64,000 nucleotides of DNA from Trichosphaerium sp. ATCC 40318 (lineage: Eukaryota > Protista > Tubulinea), in NCBI GenBank assembly GCA_038496445.1, contig JALMLS010000216.1, positions 434,001 through 498,000 on the forward strand. Reading direction: 5' to 3'. Made by a program: the position numbers and the translations under genes. The notes under the pieces were generated by a model. That model saw only the letters and a program-made list of their open reading frames with translations, searched no databases and was not told the DNA's origin. Shown here one piece after another: positions 8,165 through 56,203 of this stretch. Positions within the stretch are counted from its first letter, which is position 1, and the number at the start of each line of letters is the position of its first letter.

Positions 8165-9546
8165 ATGGATCGCGCAGAAGGTAATAAAAAACCGTTTGAT
8201 TCGGCGTATGATACAGTAAATCAAAGGTAAACGTTTTTGTTAGCTTGTATCGTTCTAAAACAATGTGTAGCACTCAAAAAACATTACTGGACATGCCTAC
8301 TGAGATTATAGCGACTATTTTAAGTCATACAACCAAATCTCGATTTGCAGCTTGTCAGACATGTCGTATCCTTTCTTCTATCATTCACGACATTATCGGA
8401 TACCATAGTATACGTATAACAACTGAAAATCAAGTGAAACAAGTTGTACAGCATTGTGGAATTATGAAACACACAAGGATCGATTTAGTACTTAACATAG
8501 ATTTTGGGTTTCCTTCTGACAAGATTGTGGAACAATTTGCAGGAGTTCATACAATTGCCTTGAAGGGTTGTCGACTTACAGACAAAGTAATGACATATTT
8601 GGCCGGAGTTCATACAATTGACCTGTTTTGGGCATCAGTGACAGATGAAGGAGTGAAAGCACTCAAAGGTGTTCATACTATTAACCTTTCTTGCACATCA
8701 GTGACAGATGAAGGAGTCAAAGCACTCAAAGGCGTTCATACTATTGACCTTTCTACGACCTTAGTGACAGATGAAGGAGTCAAAGCAATCGGAGGTGTTC
8801 ATACTATTAACCTTTGCCACATATCAGTGACAGATGAAGGAGTGAAAGCACTCAAAGGTGTTCATACTATTGACCTTTGCCACGCATCAGTGACGGATGA
8901 AGGAGTCAAAGCACTCGCCGGTGTACATACTATTCAACTTTCTTGCACATCTGTAACAGATGAAGGAGTGACAGCACTTGCAGGAGTTCATACAATTGAC
9001 TTGAGCTATACTAAAGTGACTGATAAGGGAGTTAAAGCACTTATTGGCGTTCATACTATTAACCTTTGTCGGACTGCAGTGTCAGATGAAGCACTCCAAA
9101 GTCTTGTTGGTGTACACACAATTGACCTAAAGAGTTGCAGTATTACAGTTGAAGGAATCAAAGCACTCAAAGACGTTCATGAGATTAGTCTTTCTTTCCC
9201 AAAAGACTCATGGCTTAAACATCTTTGCAATGTACACACTATCAATATTTCTCACGGGAGATATATAACAGATGATGGAATTAAATCATTGACCAATGTC
9301 AAACGCCTTGAGCTTCACAATTTCTCTAATATAACAGACTTGGGTTTTAAGACATTGGTCAACCTTGAGCACCTCACCATGGGTTACTGTCCACAGATTA
9401 CAAATGGTTGCTTGAAGCACTTACCATCTTTAAAATATGTTAAAGGATTGAGAAATACCAAAGTTACACAAGAAGCTGTTGAGTCATTGGGTATTCAATA
9501 TATTACCTCTAGAATCCAGTTCAATATGTTAGAATTAGCTAATTAA
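8165..9546 (+). CDS. F-box + leucine-rich repeat protein (22-aa 'GVHTIDL..T.VTDEGVKAL' LRRs)
   Basis: F-box LLDMPTEIIATILSH..CR.L, followed by roughly 13-15 LRRs. A short first exon from ATG 8165 splices in frame through intron 8227-8270; the rest is one ~1.27 kb exon. Confidence 0.88.
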
Positions 9547-17889: not shown

Positions 17890-18800
17890 TTCACGTAGCA
17901 GAGTGAGCCAAAAATTCTAACAAAAGAACGCTGTACCAAATACGATGACCACAGGACAAGTAACAAACTGCATACTATTGAATTCTCTACCTCCAGAAGT
18001 AATATCAGCAATATGTGCCTTTACAACCGATAAAACAAGATCAACGATTGCAACACTTAGTAAACAATTCTACGACATAATCTATGAGTATGTTGGTTTC
18101 GACAACATTTACATCCCACAAACTACAACAGCGATCACAACGCTGAGTAAACAATTCTACGACATAATCTATGAGTATGTTGGTTTCAACAACATTTACA
18201 TCCCACAAACTACAACAGAAGGACTCGTAAACTACAAGCCAATACATAAAACTGCTATACATCTTGGTAGGACATGTGACGATAAAGTATGTAAACAAAT
18301 ACTCATAACAAGCCGCCCATGTAATATCTTTTGCAATAGTGCCTGAGGAGCCTCAAGAGATTTCATAATTTTGTCATCATATCAAATGAAACAATATTTC
18401 GTTACAGCCTATGTGATTGTGAAAACCTTCATACTATTGATCTATCATATTCAATCATTAATGATGACTGTATTTGCCATTTATCAGGTGCTCATACAGT
18501 CATCCTATCTAACACCAACGTGACAAATTGTTGTTTGACACACCTCACAAATGTGAAGCAAGTTGGTCTCAGTGGAACTAAAGTTGACAAGAACGCCATA
18601 AAGAGGTGGAATATCAATCATTGTCCTATTCTTAAAATAGTAAATGTTGCGTGTCCAAACCTTCTTCAACTTATTTACCTTGATGTTTATGAGTTTACTA
18701 CTTTTGGGTTTGTGCAAGTTTTTGTTTGTTTTACTTCATTCTAACTTTGTTTATTTAGTATGATGATGGATAAGGTTAGTACTGCAACAAAATACAAGTA
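17890..18800 (+). pseudogene. F-box-LRR pseudogene with internal 87-nt tandem duplication
   Basis: F-box LLNSLPPEVISAICAF and a duplicated 29-aa block, stop at 18346. Disconnected LRR remnants follow (NLHTIDLSYSIINDDCICHLSGAHTVILSNTNVTN). Confidence 0.72.
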
Positions 18801-27249: not shown

Positions 27250-28817
27250 ATGACTGTAGTTGTAGCTCCAATGTACCAGAATTTGACTAACCTAGTAACA
27301 GCCATAAGAACACAGGTACGGAAATAAAAATCTTGTTTTTTTGTTTTTGGTCCTATTGTGGGTTTTTTATTTTTTGACCTTTTTGTTATTCTAGTTTAAA
27401 GTTTGGGCGCCCATACCTCTACCGCCATTCAATCCATGCCTCAGCACAATGAAAGTCACCGACCCATCAATAGTAAGCATGTTCCTTGAATTCAATAATA
27501 GAGAATATAAAGAACAGGAAGCGAAAGATAAACTGTTGATGTACGTTCTCCTTCAATATTTTTTTGCAGTTTTTTTTCAAGTTTCAGTTTGGCCGGTTCT
27601 GTCTTCTGTAAGGCTCGGTTTATAAAACCCTAAATTTGTCCAGAACGTCACTTTAGTAACGCTTATGGTAATAATCTTCCATCATCAGGAAAATATCTCG
27701 CATAACCTTCTTTGTGTGATTTGACATTTTTGCTTCTTCCTTTGTTCTATGAACAATAAAATAAAAAAAACTTTGTTCGCTCTTCTCCTGACTCCTATTT
27801 CAGGCTTCATCGCGCTTGCTGCGAATCAGAAATAGAATATCCCCGTGGAATTATATCTCCTAAACCTCGTAAGGTCCGTGTGGTGTACAAAACCGGAGAC
27901 GAAAAAAAAAACGATAGTACTAACCTCTTGTTTACAGCGGTCACGTGAAGATTTTGAACTTCAAACTTCGACTGAAGAGACAGTGTATGGTTCCGACTGC
28001 GAAGATAAGATAAACTGCTTGTCCTTTTCTGACAGCGACGACTATTCACCTGAAGAATATAAGTACGTTATCCGTAATAATACGTAAAAAACTATAGTTG
28101 TTTGTTTTTTTTTTAGTTTTTTCTCATTCTTACCTCATTGTATAGTAGCGACACTGACGATAGCACACATTTAATGAGACCATCAAAGGCACTCAGACGA
28201 GAAGGTATAACTCGCGTTCAAAAAAAAAAAATCTGCAATTCTACTTTTTACCAACCGCCAAAAAAAAATCACGTGCGGAAAAAAAAAAAGAGAAATATGC
28301 CGCCCTCTCACTGTTTTCCTTTTTTAAATTCATCTGTAAACTATAGTGACTTACCTCCGTTCGTTTTAGGCATGTCCTGCATAACAAGTCCGGTGCGATC
28401 TGAAATGGACTTTCCAGAGAGTATGTCTTTAAAACAACATCGCCGAATTGCCAAGTGTCGAAAGAGGCGTACTGTTACAACAGAAGAGGAACGCGATTAC
28501 CTCGAGAGAATGTACACAGCCAATCCGTACCCTAGTAGAGAGCAATATGATGAGATTAGAAAGCATTTGAACTGGAAGAGCAGTAAGCGCGTTACAAAGG
28601 TATGTTGCTTTTAATAATCCGTACCTATGTATTTTTTATTTTCATTTTGTGTCTCTTTCGTTATTGTTCGCTGTATAGCTGCTATATTCGTCATTCAGCT
28701 AATTTATTTTTGGATTATAACTAGTACCTGTTTGGGTTTTACCTTCTTATACTGTTTGTCTAGTGGTTTAACAACAAACGTTATAATACAAAAGTTAGAC
28801 TGGTCACAAGTGTATGA
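27250..28817 (+). CDS. Homeobox transcription factor (non-TALE)
   Basis: Spliced homeodomain RKRRTVTTEEERDYLERMYTANPYPSREQYDEIRKHLNWKSSKRVTK|WFNNKRYN. Upstream exons splice in frame from ATG 27250. Confidence 0.85.
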
Positions 28818-36857: not shown

Positions 36858-39192
36858 ATGGGAAACTCTAAATCGAAGCGAAAAATCAAGAGCGCACCTC
36901 CTGAGCAAGATGAAAGCGAAAGCGAAGTGAAACTGTTGATTTTTGGTACAGATATGTTAAAACCAATCAAAACACGTAACATAGCATAGGGGCAAGCATG
37001 AATGGTAACGTGGGCTCATTTTAGCAAGTTTTATACGCTCACAGAAAAGTTTAGGCAAAGCAGTACTCACAATGCTGTTCAGACGCGGAAATTTGTCTGA
37101 TGGTGACCGTGACTCCTATAGTTATCACGGATTATCGTTCATTAAGAGTTTTTTGTATGATTTAACGGAATTACCCGATTATTCGATCTTAGACAGCGTA
37201 AACTACCGTAAAACAATATTAAACGATCCTAACACTAAAAATAGGAAACACAAGACAATGTCAAGTCGTTTCTTGATATTCCTGGCGACTGCTGGACACA
37301 ACCACACATTGACGCTTTAAAACAGTACTTTCTTTGAAAACACTCTCTTTTTCACATTTTCCTTTTTTTTTCACTGTTGATGGCCCTTACTATTAGGTTG
37401 AAAGATAATCAAGGCATGTTGACTAAAATATTCACTAGTGACTCTACAAGTATTTGGATGAGTCTCAGAGAAAATGTAAAAGCGTGAGTGTTGAAGCAAT
37501 TTATTATTTATTTGTTGAAAAATTATTAAAAAGCTTGTCTGTAGTGTGATGGAATCAGTTTGCTCTCAATCCGCTGATTCTTATGTTGTGAGTGATAAAG
37601 AACTTGTTAATATATATAGAGTCATTACAGGGGTGACACAAACAAAGTATGAAATGGATGGTATCAAATATAATATACTGGCTATTGGACGTAAGTTGAT
37701 GATTGAATTTTTTTTTGACATTGTTTTGGTTTCCGCTCATAATTCGACAGTGAAATTATTACATTCCCTTGCTTAAATTGAAAGATACAGGAACGCGCAC
37801 AAGAGGAAAAAAATGGATTCATTGCTTTGATGATGTTCACGGTGTATTCTTTTGTGCCTCTCTTGTTGGGTAACCTTTTTATTGCTATCAACACGTGTTT
37901 TTTATCTTACTTTTTCCAATCCATTTAGATACTTGTATACCCTCTATGAAGACGATCAAATATGTTGCTTTGAGGAATCGTGTGAATTATTAAAACATAT
38001 TGGAAATTCTATGTTTTTCATTAAAACTGCTATTGTCATCGTAATGACACAACTTGATGTTTTCGACGAAGAAATACAGAATCGTCCAGAAAAGTTCAAA
38101 GACTTCTTCCCTGACTATCAAGGTACGACTCTTCTTTAGATTCTGTTGTTTCACAATTTAAATATCTAACAATTTATGCTCAAGGTAGCATGAATGCATA
38201 CGATTGTGGCGTGCACATGGTTAATGTTATGTGTTCAAGATTGGAGGTAAACAGAGGTGTTATTCATGTTCTTTTTGCTTCATTGACAGAAGAGAACCCA
38301 AATCTTATTCCACATCTCTTGAGACAAATGCCATCGTTTTCCAAACAAACCATAGAAGATTATAGGTCACGTGCGTTTAACAAAACTGTACAGAAGAGTC
38401 TTTATAATTTTGTTTGGTAGCAACAACAATCCGTCCTTTCATGTTCCCTAAAAGATCATCAACATTGATATCAGACCTTAAAAAGTTGAGTCAAGAACAG
38501 TACTCCCAAATCAACATGAAAAATGATTTTATTTGCTCTCTACGTGATAAAGGTCCTCTTGATATCAAAACGCTTACTGATTCTCTCAAAACATTATTTG
38601 ATTCAAAAGAAAAGGATTTTACCATCATTTCAGGAAAAGAGAGTATTAAATGTCACAAGGTAAGCCTTCAACGTAGTACTACTATTAAAGTGTTATTGAC
38701 TGTCATTTTAAATAGGCTATACTGATGTGTAGGTCTTCATTCTTTGAAGGTGCTATTCTATCAAAAGAAATTGGATCAAACAGTGATGATGAAGATGAGA
38801 ACTCAAGTGTAACTGTTGCTGATGATCCTTCAATTGTCGAGATTTTTATTCAATTTGCATACCTCGATTGCATACCTCCTAACCTTGATTTGGCCACTTT
38901 ATTCAACATTTTCAAGTTTGCTGATAAATATTGTGTGGACTCTCTACAATCTCTTGTCATCTATGATGTGTTCAATCGTCCACTTGATCATCATCACATT
39001 GAAAGAATGCATGAATGGCTTGAATATGGATTACTAACATCCGACACTATTGCAGTTAATTGTATCAGTGCATGGTTCATTTGTCAAGAATCTCAATTAG
39101 TACAAGAGTTCTTTAAAAACAAAAAGGACACAGCATCAGCAAAGCAGCTCGTATCAACGTATTCAACTCTCTTGATGAAATCAAAGAAATGA
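36858..39192 (+). CDS. G-protein alpha-like domain fused to BTB/POZ (copy A, pseudo-GTPase)
   Basis: MGN myristoylation start; VKLLIFG|ASMNG|KAV; YVVSDKEL..RVITGV; KKWIHCFDDVHGVFFCASL; LYEDD..FEES.ELL; VMTQLD. Intron 38371-38420 joins it to the BTB (DFTIISGKESIKCHK|AILMCRSSFFE..IQFAY.D..ADKYCVDSL). Confidence 0.85.
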
Positions 39193-39754
39193 AACAACAA
39201 GGATCTGCACGATTTTATTTTTGTCTTGGTTCTCATTTAACAGACAATCGATAGCATTCGTCATGGCTCATTGTTTTTTTTCCAAGTACTTATTATGTTG
39301 CGTATCCATGGAGTTGATTGAAAAGGATATGATGGAACTAGTGCTTGGTAAAAAGTACCAATTTCTTCAAAGCATAGTTTTTACCTTTTCTTTTGTAGTA
39401 ACCAATTGATGCCAATGCAAGCGCTGGCAAAGTAACTGCATCGTTGCGTACTGGAACGAGTTTGATTACCAGTTACTTAAGGGTTCCTAAAAGAGCCAAA
39501 AAAGAGTTTTCAATTAAAATAAACATTATGTACAGCCACCGACGTAGATTGCATACCCCAGTGAGTACTTGAATACTTTGCCTTAGTACTTCGGCGCTAT
39601 TTTTTGTAATCTCTAAATCGCAGGTTTTCAAGATGGTTGTGAGCACAGGTAGCCCTGCAAGCTAGCTATCCTATTGTTTTACCCTTACTTTGTAGTGAGT
39701 TTTTTTTTGGTACACGTGTTTTATTATTATTTGTTTTGCAAGTAAAATTGTTAT

Positions 39755-42700
39755 TTAATTTGTATCCATCTTATCAATTTTTGGTGCATGTAATGAAGGA
39801 GGTATATACCGCTGTGGATTAAGGATATTTGTAACATCAACTTTTTTGACTTGCAAGTCAGCTAAAGAGAAAACCATAAACAAATAATCGAACTGTCAAA
39901 ACTTTTTTTCAAACAACAAGTTCTCTGTAAAACAGCGCCTCTAACGTACCATTATTTGGTTGATTTGAACCTGAAGCTACACGAGATGATATTGACGTAT
40001 TATTTACAGCTTGATGATTCTAAGACAACATATAAGCAAGAACCCCAAACGAGAAAACAAAATGTGAAAGAAATCCAGTTTTAGTTCTACTTATTATTAT
40101 CTCTCTCACCTCTGTTTTTATTGTATTATCCAAAGAATGACCTAATCCACCAACTGCATCTTCCATTTTAATATCACTAGATAAAGGACCTTTAGGTTGT
40201 TTAATCTTCAATGGAGAGTCCTCCTTTTCGTATATTTTCCATTGTTCATTTAGTTCACAACAAGGCCTGTATGCACCTGCGTCCTGAAAGCAAAATTAAT
40301 CAATTACTCTAATAACAATAGACACCAAAAGCGAAGATAACAAACGTAAAAAGTAACTGCCAAACGTCAAAGTAACCAAGTTTTTTTGAGCTGAAATAAA
40401 AGGTTGTTTTTTGGTCGTTCTCCAAAAAATATGAATAAGAGATAATCTAGCGTTCGCACTTTAGGTGGATATTTGAATTCAGGACCAAAATTAGCCTTTA
40501 CAGAACCTCCCATGTACATAGATAAAGCTGGGTAGTACTGGCCATGGTAAATATCCTTAAAAGCCACGCCTTCAAAACAGAAAAGTTAGAACAAAAAAAC
40601 GACCAAAAAAAAACTCCGCGAAAAAAGTCTGACAGCTCGTACCTTTATTCTGACCATTGACGTAAAATACAACCTTCGAACCAGGGTTCTTAATACGCAC
40701 ATCTTTAAAGAATAAGTAAGATGCTATAGAGTGCGAAAATAATCGTAAAAGAAGAGTGAAAAATCAACTTTACCTTTACGCTTTTTACTAGATACTTTAC
40801 CATCCTTACTTTTCTCCCTCTCTTCCTCGTCAAGTTTCATTTGAATCTCTTGTTTGGCTCTTTCAACTTCCTCAATATCCATCTTTGGTAGGTAGATATA
40901 AAACCCTGTTAAGCGAGTTAGACGCCAAGTAATATAAAAAAAAGAACAACAAGCGGTTTTATATCTAATTGGTTTTATGTTTACGTACCGACTACATCTC
41001 CTACACCATATTTTATATCATAATCTATCTTTTCACATGCATGAAATACACCACCAGATGAACGACAGGAGTAAGAATAGGAGTCACACCCAACAGGGCC
41101 CTAAAAAAAAAGTAAGTGTAAAGAAAACCTTGAGGAATGGTACACACCTCTGTGTCACCTTTGAGTGTTGACCAACCACATCGTAATGCAAACTCAGGTA
41201 ATTTACTAGTTTTTTGGCGTTTATCTTGAAGTGGTACAACGATTGGTTTTTCAACTGTAGCTTCAAAATACCTTACGAAAAAAAGAAAATCAGCTGACAT
41301 TTTTTTCTCGCAGTACATAAAACCTGTTCCAAAATAAAATGTATTTTTATAACGTACCACGCTCCGTTTATCACTGGGAAAGAACTACGTGCTACCGAAT
41401 AACCCTTAAATCAAGAATTAACAAAATGAAAAAAAAATAAGAATGGAAAAATGTCAAAATGTGTCAAAGGCATCTAAATATCGACAAATGGCTTAATTGA
41501 CGATTAAACACCGCCCTTGACGTAATATTTATATATCGCAAGTTATAAACAAACACAAATTCTTGATATGCTAGCTCTGATCCCGCGAATGAAAAGCAAA
41601 AAAAAAAAAGAGGAATATCTAATACTCACACGTGGTGTTGTAGCTGTAGTGCCATCTTCAATCTTAACCCAACGATCAGAATTTTCACGAACAAGTTTAA
41701 CCTCTTTAGTTCTTCCAGGCTTATAAAATTTCGAATCCTTCAGAAATGCTTAGAAGAACAAGAAGAAGAAGTAAAACATAAATGATTATTTCTTACCATG
41801 ATAAAGTCTTCAACTATCTGATCTGTTGTTGTACGGCGTACTCTTCCTCTAACAGCATTTGGCTCAACTACATCATATGATGCAGCATCTTCTTCAGAGA
41901 TATAACCGTAATCATCAAAGTTATAGTCATCCTACACAAAACTGTAAGTCCATGCATAGTTTTCCCGCCTTTTAATAAACATACGTAATCCCTACGCTTC
42001 TTGCGTTGTCGCACACCTCTTCGTGGTTCTACTTCCTCTCTATCAGCTGTTCTACGTCCTGAAAGGCGTGTAGCTCTTCTTTTCTTCGATTGAGACTGTC
42101 TACCTGTATTCTTCATCCTCGGCCGGCTATTCAAACATTAACAAAAGTGAAAGATTAAGATGTATAAAAACATACCTTCGTGACGTCAAAGAAGGAGGCT
42201 TTAGTTTCCATGTCTTTAACCCCCAATACCCAGAACCTCTTGAATTACTTTTGAAAACATTTGGATGTGTTGACAATGCACTACGGATAGTATTTTGCCA
42301 TGTAGGTGTTCTTGTTCTTCCATAACATAATTGACTCCATTTTTGATCAATAAAAGGAATGATCTCTTGTTTAAGATGATAGAAATCCCTACATTGCAAC
42401 ACAAGTCAATAACCAAAGATCCTTGCTTGTACACGTATCTAAAACAAAGAGAAACGTACCTCTTGGATTGTAAGTAAAGGTTGTATAGAGCTACTTCAGT
42501 AAGATGAAGCCAAGGCTTAATTGTTCTTGTATAAGATTCTCTCCTTAGAGTTGAGCATTTCTTACACTGAAACTCGTAAAAGTAATCTCCAGCTAGAGGC
42601 GGTATTGTAACAATAGACTTATCAACAACCTCTACAGAACAAGCGTTAATAAAACGTATTTTGTTTTAAAACCGCAAGTTTTCGCGTTTTTCGTCTTTTG

Positions 42701-43426
42701 TTTACGCTTTGGGTGCTTTAAACGTTCCGTACCAAGCGGAAAGTATTTACGGCATCTGTAGCAATTGAGTTCTACGTCACCAGCCATCGTAGAAGCTGCG
42801 TCTTTTCCATAAACAGCTGGCCGTTTTTGTAAGTGCTCTAAGACGAGTTAATCTAACGCTTAACGCGTTCTCATGCTACGGGGAGTGCAGTGACGTACTT
42901 GGTTGCTGAAATACTTGTTTTGTAGGCGTTGGTAGCTGACGGACTGCTGGCATATTTATATTTGTCATTGGTGCTATGGGGTTGCGTACAGACATTCTTT
43001 TGAATTAATTAATTTGTAACTTGTTATAACTCGATATATAGTCACGCACGATGATGAGTGTTCGAATTTAACCTTTTTAAGGGGCGGTTGCTGTAATGGC
43101 GCGGTCGTTGATGTAAAAGTTGGCATATTAACCGACGACGTTATAGTGGGGTGATGTGTTGCTATTGGTTGCGTAGAAATCGTTTTTAATGCATTTGGTG
43201 TAGTATGTATCGGCAGATGCGTTTGAGGTGCTATATTCAATCCATGTAGTGGCTGAAGGCCTGAAAAGGCTGCAGAATTCTGTTTCAAATTTACAGATGT
43301 TGTATTGGCGTCACTGTGAGAAAATATTGGTTGATTCACAGACGTCTGTAGATTAGTGGCGGGAGATTGGACTTCTGGGTTTGCAGGATCTGTAATTGGT
43401 GTTAACCAGCTTGGAACGCCTGACAT
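39755..43426 (-). CDS. ASH2L: Set1/COMPASS subunit ASH2 (PHD-winged helix-SPRY)
   Basis: LAGDYFYEFQCKKC..ESY; ALYNL; FYHLKQEIIPFIDQKW..TWQNTIRSALS; SPRY (YSVARSSFP..YFEATV..RCGW..YGVGDVVG..AFKDIYHGQYYPALSMYMGGSVKANFGPEFKYPP). Confidence 0.92.
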
Positions 43427-43648
43427 TGTTCCCAATACTGTAGATAGCCAATAACCAAGTAATACAGGCAAAACAATAGCTTGAACTTAATAAATCCGCT
43501 AGCACTTAATCTCACGTCGTTGTTGCAGTGCAATTGTCTGCACTATGGTTGTTGTATGACTATTACGTGTACACAGTTGGTGATACTGTTGTTGGTGTTT
43601 TGTAGGCGAAATTTCAGGTTTTTTGCCAGAACTGTTACCACGGATTCA

Positions 43649-46600
43649 ATGAGAAAGCGTTTATCGTATCTACGTAAAATAGAAGAGGAGGCATTATCAA
43701 AGGAAGGCCTTTGGATTTTATCAGAAGGCAATCAAAAACGTTGGCTTTAACGTAACTTGTATTGCAGGTATTGGCCTCAAAATAGTCTTACAACGCGTAT
43801 TGCAGAAGATTCACGGCGATGTAAAGCGAATGAAGAATTGTGTCCTTGTTTTGAACCTAGAGCCAACGAGCTTACCTAATAGTAACACATATCCATCTTT
43901 AGGCGGTGTAGCACCAAAGGAGAGGTACTTTTAAATCACTCCGTTCAACCAATTAAGAAAGCCAACAACGGGGTAGAAAACGCGCTTATTTACAAGGTGG
44001 TGTTGTTTTTGGTACACCGCGTGTATTCATTGTCGATATGTTGAACAAAACAATGCCACTTCATCTAGTAGCAGGATTAATTATATACGATGCTCACAGG
44101 TACAGTTAAAATGATGTTAACTGCTCATTTTTTTTGTAACGTGCACGTTCTTCCATCTCATGTCATTATTAGTTGCACTCATGAGTCTGTGTTATCATTT
44201 ATATTGCGACTATATAGGAGACATAACAAGGTATTGTTAACGAAGCTAAAAAGTGTCAGATAGTCAATTATCACGTGATTTGTTATTTTTTTTTTCGTTT
44301 TTTTTCTTGCTAGTGTTTCTAATTGTGTAGGCTGGTTGGATAAAGGCTTTTTCTGATAAGCCTACTTCTTTTGTTATTGGATATGCTGCTATTGAAAAGA
44401 CAATGCAATCGTTGTTCGTCAAACACTTTTATTTTTGGCCCAGACAGCGAAAGGAAGTAACAGAGTGGTATGTCTTGTACTGTTTTGGATTGTTGCTGAC
44501 CATATTTAATCACAGTTTAAAGAAACATCAACCTGATGTATGTCAAGTTCATGTAGACCTTTCACCTGCAATGGCACTTGTACAAAATGCTATTATTGTA
44601 GTGATGAAAAGTATCTTGAAAGAGCTCAAATCATGTACAAAGAAAGTACGTAGCAGATTAAGTCTTTCGTTGCTGCCTTTAGCTACAATATAACCTTTAA
44701 AGTTTTTGTACATAACCTATAACAATATAGCTAACATGTTATGGCTTCTAGATTGACTTGTCTGATTTGAAAGTAGAAAATGGATTCTTGTATAAATCTT
44801 TCTACAGTATTCTTCATGGTCGTATAAGTCCTATTAGACATACACTATCTAAAAAGACGAGGCAGTTTATTCAAGATCTTGAAAGTCTTCGTAAAGTCCT
44901 AGAGTAAGGTTTTAATCACCCTGGGTTTCGTTAACTTTTATTGTTAAGTCTGTTACTTCGCTATGATTGTGTCACTTTTCTTGAACACCTTGAAATGTGG
45001 CACCGTGTTGAGCTCACTACGAAGAGTGTTGATTGGCTATTGAATGTAAAAGAAGCAGATGACTTATTTAGAGTATGCTTACTTTGTTAATGGTCACGTG
45101 TACTTATTTACTGGTTAGATATCTCAAAAGCGAGTTTATTCTACTATTAAACAAAAAAAACAAAATAAAAGAAAGTCAATCTCGCCACTTGCTCGTGTTG
45201 CCAAAAAGCGACGTAGGAGTGGTGTTAGTAAAGGAAAAGAGGAAGAAGAAGACCCTAACGCAGACGCTCAGCCTGGAAAAAGCAAACCTACCCATCCACT
45301 ACTGGAGCGAAGTAACAGTTACTCAAAAGGAACAAAGGTGTTGCTTTTTTTTGGAAAAGGGTTGTTAACGGTTTATCTTAGACTGACCAGGAACCTTCTT
45401 ATCGGTTGAATTTGGAAGCAAATCCTAAGTGGCAGCTTCTAAAAGACGTACTAGATGAGATAAAGCAAGAAAATAATAGCAAACAGAGTACACTGTCGTG
45501 TAAGAGTAATACTCTAATATCAAGTTTTTAGCTGGAGAACCTGGTGTTGTACTTGTATTAGTTGAAGAAGAACGCACGTGTTTCCAACTAAGAAGATTTC
45601 TAGAAAAGGGAGCAAGATCACTGTTGCTCGAAACATCTCAGAAGTACCTTCATAGAAAGAATAGACAACAGGTTGATTTTGTTCCTGTTGAAAGATATTG
45701 ATTAAATTGTTGTTCAGGTTAAAGTCCAAGTTAGACCACCTATGGGTGGTAAGAAAGGTAGACGTGTTAGTGGAAAAATCATAGCAAATAGAATGGCATT
45801 TAATCATGGTAAAAATACCGAACTCCTTGACTTGATAAGGCTTGAGTAAGTCGAAGTTTTTTTGTTGACGTCTGTTTTACTTTGATTAATACTAAACAAA
45901 AAAGGCAAGGAAAATTGGCATCGTTGAATCCACATCCAATGAATATTGATCTAACAGATGATGAGGGTATGGGAGACGACTTTTTTGAGTATTTTGGATT
46001 ACTACCAGCACCACATATTGTCATACATCCGTTTACGGATGGCTTGGTTTTAGAAGATGTAAGACCAAAGTTTGTCGTTTTATATGACCTTAACTTGAAG
46101 TAAGCAAAGCTTATCTACCTGAAGTACTAACTCTTATCCTTTTAGAGCCCTAAGAGAAATAGAAGTCTACAAAGCATCAAACCCTGGTAATGTATTGTTC
46201 GAAGTTTGTGATTTTAGAGCCAAAGTTTCAATCTTTCCAAGAAAGGAAAACTAAACTTTGATAGGTATGCCTTTACGGTTGTATATGTGCGCATACAACA
46301 ATGGATTTGATGAACAAAGATTTCTTTCAATGATAACACGTGAAGACGAAGCAATTGAGACCTTACAGTATAAATTCTCGGTAAACCTTGTCTCAGCTGT
46401 AAACACTTTTAACATCAACGAGGTAGAATATTGTTCCAACTGAGGAACAAGATGGGAAGAAAGAGCCTTCAAAGTTCATCAAAGATCAAGTATGTACTTC
46501 TAAAAGCAGTATAATCAAACTGTAATATACGTGCTAACAAACGTGATAGGTTCGTGATATTCAGCTTGAGCGTGTTACAAGTTCACGACAAGCAAAGAGA

Positions 46601-47557
46601 TTACGTTCCAGATTTGATAGCGAACCTATCGTTTTAGTGGATGCTCGAGAGTTCCGTAGTAAGCTTCCTGGGCTTTTAGATAAACTTGGCGTCAAAGTAA
46701 TACCTATAACATTAGTTGTTGGGTACGTGGTGGAGCAAAAACTCTACTAAAAGTTATGGTTAACACCAAGATTTTTTATTGTTATTTAGGGATTATATTT
46801 TATCTCCTGATATTGTTGTTGAGAGGAAGTCAATAGATGATCTAATAGGTTCTTTCGGATCTGGTAGATTATTCAAACAAGTCAAACAAATGACAGCAAC
46901 GTATAAACAGGCTATACTGCTAATTGAATTCGACGAGAGACGGTACGATCTCAAAACACAATCAAAAACCCCTTTTGAATTCGTTGGCAACAAATTTTGT
47001 TGTACTTCGTGTTGAATGTGCTGACGTATTTTCTGCTAGTCCCTTTACATTACATGAATACAGGCGAATGAAGGATAATGGAATTGAAGATGGAGACATT
47101 ATTTCTAAGATGGTTTTGTTGACGAAAACATTTCCTTCTCTACGAGTTCTTTGGGCAAAATCTCCTTTAGATGGTGCTCAAATACTACTAGATATAAAGG
47201 TATAGCATAAAAACATGGTCACAATTATCTCATGAACTTTTTAGGAAGGAAAACCAGAGCCTAACGTTGTAGCATCAATGGAAGCTGACGATCAAGCCAA
47301 AACAGAGCAAGCTGATCCTATTGCAATTTTAAGAAAATTTCCTGGTATGTTCATAAATACCTTTGTTCACATTACTGATTAAAATATTTCTAACAGGTGT
47401 AACAAATGGTAACTATAGAAGGCTGATATCACATGTAAATACTCTAGATCAATTATCAACAATGGAAAAAACTCATCTTATTGAAATTATTGGTAAAAAA
47501 AACGGACAGCTCCTGTGGGACTTTTTTAACAAAACGACTGATGTCACTCAGTTCTGA
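43649..47557 (+). CDS. ERCC4: DNA repair endonuclease XPF (Rad1)
   Basis: [19 protein letters not shown]; IKAFSDKP; LLRYDCVTF; LEANPKW; [17 protein letters not shown]; [12 protein letters not shown]; [31 protein letters not shown]; C-terminal HhH. Confidence 0.95.
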
Positions 47558-47961
47558 GACTAAGAATCACTCTACAAATAAAAGTACTTCCCTTTTCATT
47601 ATAATGTGCCGGCCATTTTTATATGCTATACGTTAGCCTACAACACCACGACAAACTACTGAAACAACCACAAAAAACTACAGTATTCCATAAGTGAAAC
47701 ATAAACCTCGCCCTTTGGACCTGAGAATGTGGTTGGAGTTTAAGAAGAATAGCTTGTCACCATGTGCTATACAGTGGTTCGTTTCTATCAGGTTTCTTGT
47801 AATTCACATGAAGACACGTGTTTTCAGTGATATTGAGCCTAATGTTAAATATGTACACAAAACAATCTATGAAAAATAAACGCTGTTACACGATAAAAAA
47901 AGCTCAAACCTGCTCTTTGTGTATAGAAAAAATATCGCATAGAAGCATGTAAAGTCTTGAG

Positions 47962-47990
47962 TACGAGATGCATGATGCATTTCAGACCAA
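47962..47990 (+). promoter_or_regulatory. Conserved upstream motif TACGAGATGCATGATGCATTTCA shared by both TIMP-repeat paralogs
   Basis: Its reverse complement lies at ~56411-56439, upstream of the second copy, while neighbouring sequence is much less similar. Confidence 0.45.
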
Positions 47991-48227
47991 AAAAAGTGTG
48001 AACTAAAAAAGTATTGTTTCATGTGAATGTCTCATGGATCAGGCTTCCCCAACATAACTTGTAATGTTGCGATATCACCCAAAAATTGTAAAACAGCTTT
48101 TTTTATGCGGGTTTTTTAGGGTGAATGATATACCCTCCGTTTTGTGAAACGTGATTGAACCAAGAAAGTCAAAACAGCTGAAAAAAACACTTAAACAAAA
48201 TAGTATTAAACTCAACAACAAACAACA

Positions 48228-50238
48228 ATGCACCTTCTCCTCATTGCTTGTTTAGCCATTGTATTTGTGGCTTTACCAACCAACGCATGTTCATGCTTGC
48301 CTCGAAGTGAAGAAGTGATCTATTGCGAATCAAGCACTGTACTGACAGTCAATGTATTACTCGAGCTCAACGACTTTCCCCTCAATCCATATCAAAGAAG
48401 TTTCTTGGCATTCGTCAAAGAGACACACAAGTTCCCAGGGACACCAACCAACTATGTCAAGATAATAACAGGGTACGCAAACGTAGTGATATAAAACTTT
48501 GGGTTCTCTGACGTTTCAATAGAGCAAACTCTGCAGCATGTGGTTTTAACTTTGATGTCGACTCAACTTCAAGACCAAAAGTACGTTCAGTCGCTTTTTC
48601 TCTTTGCAAACATGCTTGCTTTGTTCTGTACTAATTTGAGATTAATAGGTGTACCTCATTGCAAGTAGCAATGTCGTTAAAACAAATCCTTTCATGTACG
48701 ATGTACACGTGTCAAGTTGTGATATGGATGGGTTTTGTAACGTACCAGACACAGACTGCACAAAGACAAAGAGGTCAATCGAGAATCAGCAGAATTGCGT
48801 GATATGTACTCAACAAATCCCTGAATGCGATCCTGAATGCGAAAACTGCCGAGTCACTCCCCAAACATGCGATGCATGCGCTTCAGCAGAATGTCTGGAT
48901 GATAGATGTGTGATATGTCCTCAAGTCATTCCAGAGTGTGAAGAAGGATGTCAAAATTGTGTCGTCACTCCACAAACATGCGAATCTTGCGCCACAGCTC
49001 AATGTCAAGATGATTGTGTTTTCTGCCCTCAAGTCATTCCAGAGTGTGAACAAGGATGTCAAAACTGCGAAATCACTCCTCAAACATGCGACTCATGCCC
49101 TATCGCTACTTGCAAGGATAAACAACGTCTTACAACTCAAGCCAGCAACTGCGTTCTCTGTCCAGATGTTATTCCACAATGCGACCCTGGATGCGTACAC
49201 TGTGCTATCCGACCACGCACATGTCGCACGTGCGCTTCAGCAGAGTGCCTAGATGATCAATGTGTGGTATGCGCTCAAGTCGTTCCAGAATGCGATCCAG
49301 GCTGTGAAAATTGCGTAATCACTCCACAAACGTGTCAATCATGTGCTACAGCTCAATGCCAAGATGATTGCGTTATTTGCACTCAACAGATTCCAGAGTG
49401 TGAGCAAGGATGCGAAAACTGCGAGATCACTCCTCAAACTTGCGAATCATGCGCTTCCGCAGAATGTAAAGACGATTGCGTTTTCTGCCCTCAAGTGATC
49501 CCAGAATGCGTTGAAGGATGTAAAAACTGTGAAATCACTCCTCAAACATGTGACTCATGCGCTTCTGCGACTTGCCTTGATGATTGCGTATTCTGCACTC
49601 AAGAAGTTCCAACATGTGAAGGCGATTGTGAAAATTGTGTCATCACTCCTCAAACATGCCAATCATGTGCTTCAGCTCAATGTCAAGATGACTGCGTTAT
49701 TTGTACTCAACAGATTCCAGAATGTGATGAAGGATGTCAAACCTGCGAAATTACTCCTCAAACATGTGACTCTTGTGCCATCGCCACTTGCAAAGATAGA
49801 TCAGTATCAACTCAAGCAAGCGATTGTGTTCTATGTCCAGAAGTTGTTCCACAATGCGATCCTGGATGCGAAGACTGTGTTATTCTTCCACAAACATGTC
49901 AAACGTGTCCTTCAGCAGAGTGTCTTGATGATCATTGTGTACTATGCCCTCAAGTCATTCCACAATGCGAACCAGGATGTCAAAACTGTGAGATTACTCC
50001 TCAAACATGCCGATCATGTGCAACTGCTCAATGCCTTGATTGTGTTGTATGTCCACAGGTGATTCCAGAATGCGATGCTGATTGCAAGAACTGTATTGTC
50101 ACTCCACAAACTTGTAACGAATGTGCATCAGCACAATGTTGTGACAACCTCAAGTGTCTTCCTCGAATGCAAGAATGTACAACTGGTTGTACACCAAAAG
50201 GTTGCTGTGGCGGTAGTCAATGTATGCCCTCAGTGTAA
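48228..50238 (+). CDS. Secreted TIMP/NTR-domain protein with 12 eight-Cys (Opy2-like) repeats (copy A)
   Basis: Signal peptide ..TNA|CSCLP..YCES..KETHK..IITG|ANSAACG..YLIA; dibasic TKR site; 12 x CVxC..PxC...CxxC...PQTCxxC....C. Confidence 0.85.
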
Positions 50239-50514
50239 AGTGTAACCAACACAATAAATGCCTTTAGCTGCCTTTCACTTCGTTTACTTGCCTTGCTAGC
50301 CTTTTTAACATATTTTTCTTTGTTGCTTCTTTACTTTCAAGCATGTAGACTTTGCTACAAAATCGCTAAAGATCTGTAATCATTTGTTCTGCTTATGATT
50401 ACTCACATGAGAAATCTCATCGACTTTGAAGTCAAGTACGTATGAGATACAATCAAAGAAAGGAGGTATACTACTTCGTACTGTTTCAAGGAGTTTTTAT
50501 TATTGTTACATTAT

Positions 50515-51606
50515 TTACATTTGAGCAAGTGTTGCTCCCTTTTGAGAATCAACACGAGATGAAAGTCCTTTTACGTTATTGTAATGTCTTACAAACTTTA
50601 ACAAAAGTTTCCTACTACCTTTCTTTTTCTTCTTAGAAATACCTCTTAACCGAGTCAAATCCTTCTTTTTACAAACCTCACCCTTACTCTCACTATCAAC
50701 CTTTTGTGGAGCCCTTTTTTTCTTGTGATACTTCTTCTTCTTCAAAGAAGAATGAATCCCTTTTTGCACTTGTTCATTTATATTTTCTTTATCGTCATCA
50801 CCACGTGATTGTGGAGAAGCTGGAGCTTTCCCCTTTATATCTGTTGTAGTACTATTAAAATACTGCTTTATACTTCTATCCTATAGCAAAAAAAGATTAA
50901 AACGAGTCTTAGCAAGCAAGCTAAAAATCCAAAAGTGGCAAACAACAAAAAAAAAGTAATGCTTCTTTTCTCATACCTTTGTTTGAAGTACGTTGTACTT
51001 AAATTCAGGTAACCGCTTCCCTGCCTTTATAGAATCTAATATCCAATCCGGATGTACGACATGAACGAGCTTCTAAAATCATCAAGAATTAGCCACAAAA
51101 CCACCTGTCAAGGCAACTTTCAAGCCATGTTTTGTTCGATGTTTTTTTTTCTAAGTTGTTTGTTCATAAAACGTGCCTTTGAAGTGCTTTGCATACGGTC
51201 TAGCATCGTTGCAGCTTTAGCAGAGCATAATGCAGTACATACAATGTGTGATGTGTTCTTAATTTTGAAATAAAATCTATTTTGGCGGGTTTTCTTTCAG
51301 TGCACGGTTGTATGAAGGTTAAACGTACTTTACTACGCCGTCGTGCTCTTGTACATGTTTCTTTAAGTGTAGAGCAGATAGAGAATCAGTATAACCAAGA
51401 AAGTAGATAGATACGCCTTTGAATATTTGGCTTTTGCTCTACAAAACTGTCAAAAGTTGTATGGTGGTTATTGTGAATGCCTCTGGCTTGTTTTGATGCT
51501 CAATTTTATGTTCTCTTCGTTTCCAATAATGTTTACGGTTTGTATTAGTTTTGGTGCTTGGAGCCGCGTCAAATCGCTCCCCAGATAGCGATGGTCCATG
51601 AATCAT
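50515..51606 (-). CDS. Stand-alone REV1-type BRCT protein with Lys-rich tail
   Basis: YWKRREHKIEHQ..SQIFKGVSIYFLGYT..LKKHVQEHDG..SHIVCTALCSAK..VHVVHPDWILDSIKAGKRLPEFKY; no polymerase domain; the model needs two GC-AG introns. Confidence 0.8.
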
Positions 51607-51939
51607 GGCTATGTACGTATATGAGCGCTGGATTACTTCAAAAGGGTTCTAGACAAGTGCACGTACTCTAAACTACTAAATCGTGTATGTAGGAGCTGTT
51701 TTAGTGTAACGCGGGAATTCCAAATGAAAAAACGCGACTTCTCGCGAAATGTAATACCAAAGATTGCTGTCTTGTTCCTATAACCTAGTATCACTGGTGT
51801 TCTATTCGCTACTTATGGGCTATTTTTGAGAAGCCTCAAGCAAAAGACGTTTACGAAAAGTAACGAAATTTCTCCGTTTTTGTATTGGCTCGCTTTGAGA
51901 ATGGATGGTTTTGTGGTATTTTTTTGATTTATTCAGTAT

Positions 51940-54269
51940 TTATTTCGCTTTCTTTTTACCTTTGTCATCCAATAAGTTTGGGTACATTGATACGAGATGC
52001 TTTGCTGATGCTGTGTCCTTTTTGTTTTTAAAGAACTCACGGACTAATTGAGATTCTTGAGAAATGAACCATGCACTGATAAGCGTTATGCCTACAGAGT
52101 TACATGTTAATAGTCCATATTCAAGCCATTCATGCATTCTTTCAATGTGATGATGATCAAGTGGACGATTGAACACATCATAGATGACAAGAGATTGTAG
52201 AGAGTCCACACAATATTTATCAGCAAACTTGAAGATGTTGAATAAAGCGTCCAAATCAAGGTTAGGAGGTATGCAATCGAGGTATGCAAATTGAATAAAA
52301 ATCTCGACAATTGAAGGATCATCAGCAACAGTGATACTTGAGTTCTCATCTTCATCACTGTTTGATCCAATTTCTTTTGATAGAATAGCACCTTCAAAGA
52401 ATGAAGACCTACACATCAGTATAGCCTAGTTAAAATGACAGTCAATAACACTTTAATAGTAGTACTACGTTGAAGGCTTACCTTGTGACACTTAATGCTC
52501 TCTTTTCCTGAAATGATGGTAAAATCCTTTTCTTTTGAATCAAATAATGTTTTGAGACAATCAGTAAGCTTTTTGGTATCAGTTACACATTCAAGAGGAC
52601 CTTTATCACGTAGAGAGCAAATAAAATCATTTTTCATGTTGATTTGGGAGTACTGTTCTTGACTCAACTTTTTAAGGTCTGATATCAATGTTGATGATCT
52701 TTTAGGGAACATGAAAGGACGGATTGTTGTTGCTACCAAACAAAATTATAAAGACTCTTCTGTACAGTTTTGTTAAACGCACGTGACTTATAATCTTCTT
52801 CTGTGGTTTGTTTGTTAGTCGATGGTATTTGTCTCAAGAGATGTGGAATAAGATTTGGGTTCTCTTCTGTCAACGAAGCAAAAAGAACATGAATAACACC
52901 TCTGTTTTCCAATTTTGAACACATAACATTAACCATGTGCACGCCACAATCGTATGCATTCATACTACCTTGAGCATAAATTGTTAGATATTTAAATTGT
53001 GAAACAACAGAATCTAAAGAAGAGTCGTACCTTGATAGTCAGGGAAGAAGTCTTTGAACTTTTCTGGACGATTTTGTATTTCTTTTTCAAAAATATCAAG
53101 TTTTGTCATTACAAGGACAAACGTAGTATGTGAAAAGAACCTGCTGGACACAATTGCTTGAAATAAATCACAAGATTCATTAAAGTCCTTGATTGTATCA
53201 TCTTCATATAGGTTATGCAAGTATCTAGTGGATTGGGAAAAAGTAAGAAAAATCGTTGTTAGTCAAGGTAAAAAAAGGTTACCCAACAAGAGATACACAA
53301 AAGAATACACCATGAATATACTTATCAAAGCAATGAATCCATTTTGATCTTTCATTCCGAGTACCTACCAAAAGTCACAGCAAATCACAACCCTCAAACT
53401 AACCTCCAACATCAAACACTGAATATTTGGCATCATCCATCTCATACGATAACTCAATAATACCAGTAGTGCGAATACGCAAGTTATAAAGCTCTTTATC
53501 ACTCACAACATAAGAATCAGCGGATTGAGAGCAAACTGATTCCATCACACTACGAAGAAAGCAGTTTAATACAAAAAAAAAAATTTGTATGTATAAATTA
53601 ACAAAACCAATAAATAGTGATTGTTTGTAACTACGGACGCTATTACATTGGTACTGAGGCACCCCCTTATCGAGCTTGATTTATTGTATGCCATCATACT
53701 CACAAAAGCTTTATCATCTTTTAACCTAAGCGAGGATGTAAAAGAATGCGAAAAAAAAAGGAAAAAGGAAAAAAAAAAGAAAATGTTTTCAAAGAAAGTA
53801 CTGTTTTAAAGTGTCAATGTGTGGTTGTGTCCAGCAGTCACCAGGAATAGCAAGAAACGACTTGACATTGTTTTGTGTTCCCTATTTTTAGTGTTAGGAC
53901 CGTTTAATATTGTTTTACGGTAGTTTACGCTGTCTAAGGTCGAATAATCGGGTAGTTGCGTTAAATCATCAATAAAACTCCTAATAAACGATAATATATT
54001 AACTTGGTATGTGGAACGGTTATCATTGGTTATATTTGGGAGTCTAAATCGCATGAAAAGCGTTGATTTGCCTAAACTATCTGTAAGCCTGTAGAACTTT
54101 GCTAAAATACGCTGAAAATACCTGTCATAGATGCTCCTATGCTATATCAGTGTCTGATTGGTTTTTAACAAAAATATGTACCTAAAACCAATACTTTTAC
54201 ATCTAACTTTTTAGGCGGTTGTTTTACAACTACAGTCTTGAATTGTCGCTTTGTCGACTTGTTGCCCAT
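51940..54269 (-). CDS. G-protein alpha-like domain fused to BTB/POZ (copy B)
   Basis: MGN..VKVLVLG|ASMTG|KSTLF; LRIRTTGIIE; FDVGG|TRNERSKWIHCFD; VMTKLD. Same intron positions as copy A and a near-identical BTB. Confidence 0.88.
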
Positions 54270-54657: not shown

Positions 54658-56203
54658 TTACACTGAGGGCATACATTGACTACCTCCACAGCAACCTTTT
54701 GGTGTACAACCAGTTGTACATTCTTGCATTCGAGGAAGACACTTGAGGTTGTCACAGCATTGTGCTGATGCACATTCGTTACAAGTTTGTGGAGTGACAA
54801 TACAGTTCTTGCAATCAGCATCGCATTCTGGAATCACCTGTGGACATACAACACAATCAAGACATTGAGCAGTTGCACATGACCGGCATGTTTGAGGAGT
54901 AATCTCACAGTTTTGACATCCTGGTTCGCATTGTGGAATGAATTGAGGGCATAGTACACAATGATCATCAAGACACTCTGCTGAAGGACACGTTTGACAT
55001 GTTTGTGGAAGAAAAACACAGTTTTCGCATCCAGGATCGCATTGTGGAACAACTTCTGGACATAGAACACAATCACTTGCTTGAGTTGATACCGATCTAT
55101 CTTTGCAAGTGGCGATGGCACAAGAGTCACATGTTTGAGGAGTAATCTCGCAGTTTTGACATCCTTCATCACATTCTGGAATCTGTTGAGTACAAATAAC
55201 GCAGTCATCTTGACATTGAGCTGAAGCACATGATTGGCATGTTTGAGGAGTGATGACACAATTTTCACAATCGCCTTCGCATGTTGGAACTTCTTGAGTG
55301 CAGAATACGCAATCATCAAGGCAAGTCGCAGAAGCGCATGAGTCACATGTTTTAGGAGTGATTTCACAGTTTCGACATCCTTCAACGCATTCTGGGATGA
55401 CTTGAGGGCAGAAAACGCAATCATCTTGACATTGAGCTGTGGCGCAAGATTCGCATGTTTGTGGAGTGACGACACAATTTTCACATCCTTCTTCACACTC
55501 TGGAATGACTTGAGGACATATCACACATCTATCATCCAGACATTCTGCTGAAGCGCACGCATCGCATGTTTGGGGTGTGACTCGGCAGTTTTCGCATTCA
55601 GGATCGCATTGTGGGATTTGTTGAGTACATATCACGCAATTCTGTTGATTCTCGATTGACCTCTTTGCCTTTGTGCAGTCTGTGTCTGGTACGTTACAAA
55701 ACCCGTCCATATCACAACTAGACACGTGTACATCGTACATGAAAGGATTTGTTTTAACGACATTGCTACTTGCAATGAGGTACACCTATTAATCTCAAAT
55801 TAGTAAACAAAGCAAGCGTATTATAAAAAAGAGAAAAAGAGATTGACGTACTTTTGGTTTTGAAGTTGAGTCGACATCAAAGTTAAAACCGCATGCTGCA
55901 GAGTTCGCTCTATTGAAACGTCAGAGAACCCAAAATATTATTTTACTATGCGTATGCGTACCCTGTTATTATCTTGACATAGTTGGTTGGTGTCCCTGGG
56001 AACTTGTGTGTCTCTTTGACGAATGCCAAGAAACTTCTTTGATATGGATTGAGAGGAAAGTCGTTGAGCTCGAGTAACACATTGACTGTCAGTACAGCGC
56101 TTGATTCGCAATAGATCACTTCTTCACTTCGAGGCAAGCATGAACATGCGTTGGTTGGTAAAGCCACAAATACAATGGCTAAACAAGCAATGAGAAGGTG
56201 CAT
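54658..56203 (-). CDS. Secreted TIMP/NTR + 8 eight-Cys repeats (copy B)
   Basis: Near-identical to 48228-50238 but lacks repeats 3-6 (154 aa). Confidence 0.85.

Follow-up and report, generated by a model that had tools for sequence, protein, structure and literature searches.

RhoBTB is a component of Cullin-3 (Cul3) complexes, and Rab40, which bears a SOCS box, is a further GTPase found in a cullin-ligase adaptor (PMC13236570). In the ARF family, some GTPases have likewise acquired BTB or F-box domains in a lineage-specific manner (PMC8358228). In parallel, the BTB-Cul3 machinery was shown to be directed at heterotrimeric G-protein subunits, KCTD5/CUL3 acting on G-beta-gamma (PMC11047111, PMC9976452). 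While GTPase-BTB proteins are already known for Rho (RhoBTB) and, in a scattered manner, for ARF, the wiring of a heterotrimeric G-alpha to a BTB domain is not described in the literature searched; no report of a G-alpha-BTB protein was found there, and BTB goes unmentioned in the survey of de Mendoza et al. 2014. Two genes predicted to have this architecture, called here copy A and copy B, are present in a stretch of 64,000 nucleotides (nt) from Trichosphaerium sp. ATCC 40318 (GCA_038496445.1, contig JALMLS010000216.1, positions 434,001 to 498,000 of the forward strand). This whole stretch is referred to below as the window, and all positions are counted from its first letter.

Two paralogous genes with a common exon map

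Copies A and B are best explained as genuine paralogous genes of the expressed type, belonging to a family specific to this lineage. An earlier note, made from the DNA letters, had placed two genes at 36858-39192 (+) and 51940-54269 (-), each with a Met-Gly start, a G-alpha domain and a BTB domain. Coordinates, frames and domains agree with the gene models presented here, and the architecture of a Met-Gly start followed by a G-alpha-like domain and one BTB is upheld by these models together with the domain matches.

The DNA of the window is eukaryotic, its G+C content is about 37% and its introns are short. Within it, the two paralogs are convergent, copy A lying on the forward strand (ATG 36858, stop 39192) and copy B on the reverse strand (ATG 54269, stop 51940), and the 64 kb contain no further copy of the gene. 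The gene models were built with canonical GT..AG sites only. They predict 10 exons in each copy, which join into a single uninterrupted open reading frame (ORF) of 551 amino acids (aa) in copy A and 559 aa in copy B. Introns range in both copies from 39 to 201 nt, most of them measuring 44-62 nt, and their positions and phases are identical between A and B.

Comparison of the copies also reveals coding constraint. Seven of the 10 exons have the same length in A and B (88, 15, 153, 79, 146, 194 and 186 nt) at 60-93% identity, while introns 4 and 5 differ greatly (61 vs 89 nt and 100 vs 39 nt). The clean indels that separate the copies in exons 8-10 (3, 3, 12 and 3 nt) are all in frame. Finally, the ratio of non-synonymous to synonymous divergence (dN/dS) between A and B is 0.34-0.78 across exons and stays below 1 in each of them, with values of 0.37-0.43 in exons 9-10. 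Taken together, equal exon lengths, in-frame indels and dN/dS below 1 indicate that both copies have been kept as coding genes, exons 9-10 included. Since the ratio is below 1 in every exon, it lends no support to an arms race.

The features of the two copies are the following.

36858..39192, + strand: copy A gene, 10 exons, 551 aa, with a G-alpha-like domain (probable pseudo-GTPase), a linker, a BTB domain and a helical tail.
36858..36945, + strand: A exon 1, MGNSKSKRK start (Gly2, Ser6 and a basic run, of the myristoylation type; motif read directly) and beta1.
36990..37004, + strand: A micro-exon 2, 15 nt, completing the P-loop GASMNGKAV; its place and length are kept in B.
37055..37207, + strand: A exon 3, last part of the P-loop followed by the beginning of the shortened helical part; its 3' end is the least certain boundary.
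37405..37483, + strand: A exon 4, divergent exon of the helical part, 79 nt in A and B.
37545..37690, + strand: A exon 5, switch I region with Y137/I140 in place of Arg/Thr, running through AIG.
37791..37869, + strand: A exon 6, switch II (RTRTRGKKWIHCF), with an alternative acceptor 6 nt upstream.
37929..38122, + strand: A exon 7, alpha3 to G4 TQLD, FFPDYQG; Pfam G-alpha match at 6.1e-12.
38185..38370, + strand: A exon 8, presumed equivalent of beta6-alpha5, with no recognisable G-alpha similarity.
38371..38420, + strand: A intron 8, GTGCGT..TAG, 50 nt; its removal joins the G-alpha part to the BTB part.
38421..38659, + strand: A exon 9, linker and first BTB strands and helix, with a 12-nt in-frame indel relative to B.
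38716..39192, + strand: A exon 10, remaining BTB and helical tail resembling BACK/3-box; Pfam BTB match at 3e-4.
51940..54269, - strand: copy B gene, 10 exons, 559 aa, with intact nucleotide-binding motifs, Thr for the catalytic Gln, a linker, a BTB domain and a helical tail.
54182..54269, - strand: B exon 1, MGNKSTKRQ start (Gly2, Thr6 and a basic run) and beta1.
54122..54136, - strand: B micro-exon 2, 15 nt, completing the P-loop GASMTGKST.
53919..54071, - strand: B exon 3, from the gene model, with no G-alpha match in PDB.
53639..53717, - strand: B exon 4, from the gene model.
53404..53549, - strand: B exon 5, switch I R137/T140 through DVGG; Pfam match at 2.1e-7; aligned to Gs 164-215.
53283..53364, - strand: B exon 6, T162 at the position of the catalytic Gln and switch II; aligned to Gi/Go 205-228.
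53031..53224, - strand: B exon 7, alpha3 to TKLD, FFPDYQG; Pfam match at 1.7e-16; top PDB match yeast Gpa1 at 1.9e-10.
52783..52968, - strand: B exon 8, from the gene model, with no G-alpha match.
52733..52782, - strand: B intron 8, of the same sequence as A intron 8.
52482..52732, - strand: B exon 9, linker and start of the BTB.
51940..52425, - strand: B exon 10, BTB core and helical tail; Pfam BTB match at 1.9e-4.

Uncertainty in this map concerns two boundaries. The end of exon 3 was set at the donor GTAAAA, the sole good phase-compatible donor that is common to both copies. For intron 5 of copy A, two AGs 6 nt apart can serve as the acceptor, giving either AIGRT, with the same length as B, or AIGHT. 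In both copies, the P-loop requires the inclusion of the 15-nt micro-exon. The linker between the G-alpha-like domain and the BTB comprises about 80 aa.

The G-alpha-like domain

The identity of both domains, G-alpha and BTB, is well above chance. When single exons were compared with the Pfam profile PF00503, matches were obtained for B exon 7 (1.7e-16, 60.8 bits), A exon 7 (6.1e-12, 45.8 bits) and B exon 5 (2.1e-7, 30.9 bits), the cut-off being 48.8 bits. The G-alpha family is recognisable over profile positions 152-281 only, a part that begins at switch I and reaches the G4 region, and likewise in PDB searches, where B exons 5, 6 and 7 were aligned in colinear order to Gs 164-215, Gi/Go 205-228 and Gi 234-293. 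Exons 3, 4 and 8, which would encode the helical part and beta6-alpha5, gave no G-alpha match in the Pfam or PDB search. An insert is present between the P-loop and switch I. From the P-loop to the switch I Arg, 131 residues are found in Gi; this distance is 99 residues here and thus about 32 residues shorter. Furthermore, a free C-terminal alpha5 tail for receptor coupling is absent from the spliced model, in which exon 8 runs on into the linker and the BTB. The exon 8 segment that stands at the position expected for alpha5 (ENPNLIPHLLRQI, 52784-52966, -) displayed a weak and non-significant match to the XPC-binding domain of RAD23B (E 0.6).

The two copies differ in the state of their nucleotide-binding motifs. 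The P-loop pattern GxxxxGK[ST] is present in copy B as GASMTGKST and is lost in copy A, which reads GASMNGKAV. In switch I, R137 and T140 of copy B are aligned to R201 and T204 of Gs, while copy A carries Y137 and I140 and has lost both residues. The G3 motif of copy B is DVGG followed by T162, a Thr that is aligned to Q204 of Gi, and that of copy A is AIGRT, or AIGHT through the other acceptor; DxxGQ with the catalytic Gln is therefore found in neither. At G4, TKLD of copy B and TQLD of copy A are both aligned to NKID of yeast Gpa1, and KWIHCF of switch II is retained in A and B.

Most of what the earlier note had read in these motifs was recovered. It had described copy B as keeping the P-loop, the R..T of switch I and TKxD with DVGGT instead of DVGGQ, and the gene model and the PDB alignments concur. 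The replacement of the catalytic Gln in both copies was equally confirmed, as was the more degenerate state of copy A, to which the loss of the switch I Arg and Thr has now been added. For copy A, GKAV and TQLD hold, while AIGHT depends on one of the two acceptors and becomes AIGRT with the one that gives the length of B.

The same note had spoken of a crippled or locked GTPase. The loss of the Gln stands, and the lock has to be qualified. Rap GTPases naturally have a Thr at the position of the catalytic Gln and nevertheless cycle, helped by a GTPase-activating protein of their own, so that copy B may be slow rather than locked. Copy B is probably a GTP binder with slow hydrolysis, behaving as a slow switch. 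In the same way, natural and functional G4 motifs include TKLD in Rac1 and TQID in Cdc42, and because TQxD occurs naturally in the latter, the G4 change of copy A need not in itself be a loss. Copy A is nonetheless a probable fixed-state pseudo-GTPase, deprived of normal nucleotide and Mg binding, because the P-loop Ser, the Arg and Thr of switch I and DxxG are all lost.

Both N-termini, read directly, start with MGN, carry Ser (A) or Thr (B) as their sixth residue and include a basic run. This should be a good context for N-myristoylation, and lipidation of both proteins is predicted on this ground.

The BTB domain and the C-terminal tail

The BTB is real but very divergent. On the last exon alone, the Pfam profile PF00651 gave matches at 1.9e-4 (B) and 3e-4 (A). 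The two scores, 21.4 and 22.0 bits, lie just above the gathering cut-off of 20.5, and this exon carries profile positions 28-100 only. Each gene has a single BTB. Feature matches of exon 10 to BTB clusters in the Atlas reached 0.94, and in the Atlas shape search a BTB+BACK cluster was ranked first, with a template modelling (TM) score of 0.52. The AlphaFold (AF2) model of B exon 10, a partial domain with a predicted local distance difference test (pLDDT) score of 71, displays the helices of the BTB and, after them, another four. With this model, Foldseek returned SPOP chains as top matches, although weakly (E 0.07-0.3, TM 0.35-0.42). The profile, feature and structure matches of the BTB are all weak.

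Among the structural matches of exon 10, the one with the top identity (23%), at rank 14, was the AlphaFold DB entry A0A397IT85, a protein of 594 aa with a BTB at 475-576. Its overall length and layout are similar to those of copies A and B.

Mosaic divergence of the two copies

Synonymous divergence (dS) between A and B ranges from 0.36 to 1.5 over exons 1-7 and from 0.04 to 0.17 over exons 8-10, a roughly ten-fold difference between the 5' and 3' parts of the genes. In addition, the copies do not differ at any position of a 209-nt stretch in which intron 8 lies. The contrast in dS and the identical stretch indicate that the 5' and 3' halves differ in their history and not in selection. Gene conversion or exchange between the paralogs would account for these different histories. 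Positive selection was considered as a source of the mosaic and rejected, as dN/dS is below 1 throughout and dS itself differs about ten-fold between the two parts.

Within the 3' part, the copies are identical at 62/62 positions of intron 7 (38123-38184), at 50/50 of intron 8 (38371-38420) and at 55/56 of intron 9 (38660-38715), whereas the exons that lie amid these introns (38185-39192 and the B equivalents) are 91-93% identical. Substitutions thus affect 49 of 984 exon positions and 1 of 168 intron positions (Fisher p = 0.006). The exon differences occur in small clusters and include synonymous sites. Neither plain gene conversion nor dN/dS accounts for this concentration of variation in exons.

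A candidate membrane-bound Cullin-3 adaptor

The product of each gene would consist, in this order, of a Met-Gly N-terminus, a G-alpha-derived domain, a linker of some 80 residues and a single BTB of the long form with a 3-box/BACK-like extension. Such a layout suggests a Cullin-3 adaptor of the SPOP type, with a G-alpha-like domain in place of MATH. To the observed gene structure, domain identity, motif states and coding constraint, a functional reading can be added in which lipidation, Cul3 binding and the nature of the partner are all inferred, the Cul3 part by analogy with RhoBTB, SPOP and KCTD5-G-beta-gamma. N-myristoylation would tether the protein to the membrane, and the BTB would dimerise and recruit Cullin-3. 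The G-alpha-derived domain, with its shortened helical insert and no free receptor-coupling C-terminus, would serve as the recognition module for proteins that read the G-alpha surface, for example G-beta-gamma, regulators of the RGS or GoLoco type, or effectors. The earlier note had also named pathogen effectors that target G proteins as possible prey of such a bait, a conjectural idea. Taken as a whole chain, we consider that this membrane-bound dimeric Cul3 adaptor has about an even chance of being right. The fusion itself has the weight of a well-supported prediction from gene models in one genome.

A much wider proposal can also be made, and it is a speculative one that we think rather unlikely. 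It states that the genome holds a whole set of cullin-ligase adaptors, of both BTB and F-box types, armed with state-locked mimics of signalling GTPases. With its surface fixed as 'on' or 'off', each mimic would capture the regulators or effectors that recognise this state and mark them for degradation. Copies A and B would be the 'off-like' and 'on-like' baits of this set, and the variation concentrated in exons would reflect retargeting.

Several points weigh against the adaptor reading. All splice joins, including that of intron 8, were predicted from DNA letters alone, and no clear branch-point consensus is seen near the 3' end of intron 8. The BTB is divergent, with Pfam scores of 21-22 bits and Foldseek E of 0.07-0.3 on the model of a partial domain; the exon 10 profile retrieved no PDB sequence match at E<=10, and the phi-x-E motif that contacts Cul3 could not be placed by eye in the alpha3-beta4 loop, which is long and acidic. 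G-beta-gamma is a less convincing partner because the N-terminal helix, the element in contact with G-beta, has lost about 14 residues relative to Gi and includes Pro-Pro. Finally, protein and metagenome searches with single exons found no orthologue that would show whether the fusion is conserved.

The existence of a one-protein fusion hangs on the 50-nt intron 8 (38371-38420 in A; 52733-52782 in B), the removal of which is inferred from its size, typical for the introns of the gene, and from the reading frame, which is kept when it is taken out. Were it retained, always or under certain conditions, the TAG at 38418-38420 would end the protein after the G-alpha part. The main product would then be a G-alpha-like protein of about 330 aa, ending at this TAG or at the B equivalent, and the BTB would be left untranslated or restricted to a minor isoform. 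The acceptor TAG being itself the in-frame stop, a donor (GTGCGT) weaker than most donors of the gene and the lack of a clear branch site close to the acceptor are in line with retention. On the contrary, neither copy has lost the reading frame of exons 9-10, where the indels (12 and 3 nt) are in frame and dN/dS is 0.37-0.43, and such constraint argues that these exons are translated. Moreover, the next ATG lies just 20 nt past the in-frame TAG, too near for an independent gene, as such a gap leaves no room for a second transcription unit. RNA-labelled runs contain 0.45-0.53 of the locus words, which is weak evidence for expression. As 31-mers lying wholly inside exons were calculated to make up about 0.56 of the locus and genomic DNA would give 1.0, this share is near that of an intron-free transcript and far from that of genomic DNA, again as a weak indication. 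Intron retention is therefore held to be improbable. Still less credible is the view that A and B are decaying by-products of a lineage-specific expansion without present function, which we regard as very improbable. Most nucleotide-binding residues are gone from copy A, dN/dS is fairly high in several exons (0.5-0.8), and relatives were not found in protein searches with exon 10 as query, all of which speak for decay. However, not one stop or frameshift interrupts the 10 exons of either copy, every splice site is intact, and exon lengths have been held with in-frame indels while intron lengths drifted.

The main competing explanation accepts the fusion and questions the role of the BTB, which would only dimerise or oligomerise without Cullin-3. 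Copies A and B would then form membrane-bound dimers that imitate G-alpha in a locked state and hold G-beta-gamma, receptors or RGS proteins sequestered, and would act as built-in dominant-negative or dominant-active regulators. Engineered G-alpha mutants at two of the positions substituted in copy A, where the P-loop Ser is changed to Ala and the second Gly of DxxG is lost, are dominant negatives, which fits such a role. Many BTB proteins do not bind Cul3, and the unrecognised phi-x-E motif and the lack of a PDB sequence match for the BTB point in the same direction. The helical extension that follows the BTB, on the other hand, is like the 3-box/BACK of Cul3 adaptors and argues for the adaptor reading. 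Sequestration without Cullin-3 is thus an alternative to be taken seriously, albeit an unlikely one, and the Cul3 adaptor is the reading that we favour.

Search for relatives

Relatives were sought with single exons as queries, either the BTB exon 10 or the G-alpha exon 7. When exon 10 was run exhaustively with HMMER against 1.84 billion representatives, there was one match and no true relative. This match, a 1355-aa ankyrin-repeat protein (P0001), was rejected as a relative: its value of 5.1e-18 is inflated by repeats, and only the last 26 or so residues were aligned, 13 times. The tail of copy B (51943-52020, -) thereby resembles the segment between the repeats of P0001. No ankyrin exons were found downstream of A or B. 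In a word-indexed protein search, the BTB exon retrieved no relatives, and exact look-ups of the ORF of the last exon of B and of the ankyrin-repeat protein returned no record. Metagenome contigs were scanned with both queries, the BTB exon and G-alpha exon 7, and no match was obtained.

Other genes in the window

A long Cys-rich repeat ORF occurs on either side of copy B, its two copies, at 48649-50238 (+) and 54658-55785 (-), being inverted. An F-box and leucine-rich-repeat gene is contained in a single 433-aa ORF at 8245-9546 (+), with LRR_6 at 2.6e-25 and F-box at 1.5e-4, and a second, weak F-box-like ORF is located at 17945-18346 (+). These two ORFs represent extra ubiquitin-ligase adaptor genes in the window. 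In addition, a homeodomain ORF (28138-28614, +; 7.1e-7) and a BRCT-containing ORF (640-1200, +; 2e-5) were observed.

Comparison with known systems

Among G-alpha proteins, yeast Gpa1, of the fungal group I, is the top PDB match of B exon 7 (1.9e-10) and shares with copies A and B the FPDYQG motif and the Met-Gly start. Unlike Gpa1, they have a Thr in place of the catalytic Gln, a shortened helical part and alphaN, and a linker and BTB in place of the receptor-coupling alpha5 tail.

RhoBTB, an atypical Rho GTPase that is both an adaptor and a substrate of Cul3, resembles A and B in having, on one chain, a GTPase domain with non-canonical catalytic residues placed N-terminal to BTB. However, the GTPase of A and B is of the heterotrimeric G-alpha type, with a helical insert and a built-in Arg finger, whereas that of RhoBTB is of the Rho type. 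A and B also contain one BTB where RhoBTB has two, and they carry an N-terminal myristoylation motif. The RhoBTB layout of a Rho-type GTPase followed by two BTB domains is thus not that of A and B, and the relationship holds only at the level of domain families. The ARF proteins fused to BTB or F-box and Rab40 likewise illustrate a recurrent recruitment of GTPase domains to cullin adaptors, but these are small GTPases and not G-alpha.

The order of an N-terminal recognition domain, a BTB and a helical 3-box/BACK extension is shared with SPOP and other MATH-BTB proteins. In A and B, the G-alpha-like domain takes the position of MATH; SPOP is matched weakly in structure (E 0.07, TM 0.35-0.42) and not at all in sequence.

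The functional logic proposed for A and B is the same as that of the KCTD5/KCTD2/KCTD17-Cul3 ligases, which ubiquitinate G-beta-gamma. The KCTD proteins differ from A and B by their pentameric BTB of the T1 type and by the absence of a G-alpha-like module, as they bind G-beta-gamma through their C-terminal domain. If both the fusion and Cul3 binding are true, copies A and B would represent a natural reuse of the G-alpha fold as a degradation-targeting module. Copy A, which is predicted to be nucleotide-dead, and copy B, which lacks the catalytic Gln, would form a natural pair for asking which state of G-alpha is read. Heterotrimeric G-protein signalling would then be linked to cullin ligases by a route unlike that of KCTD5 and G-beta-gamma.

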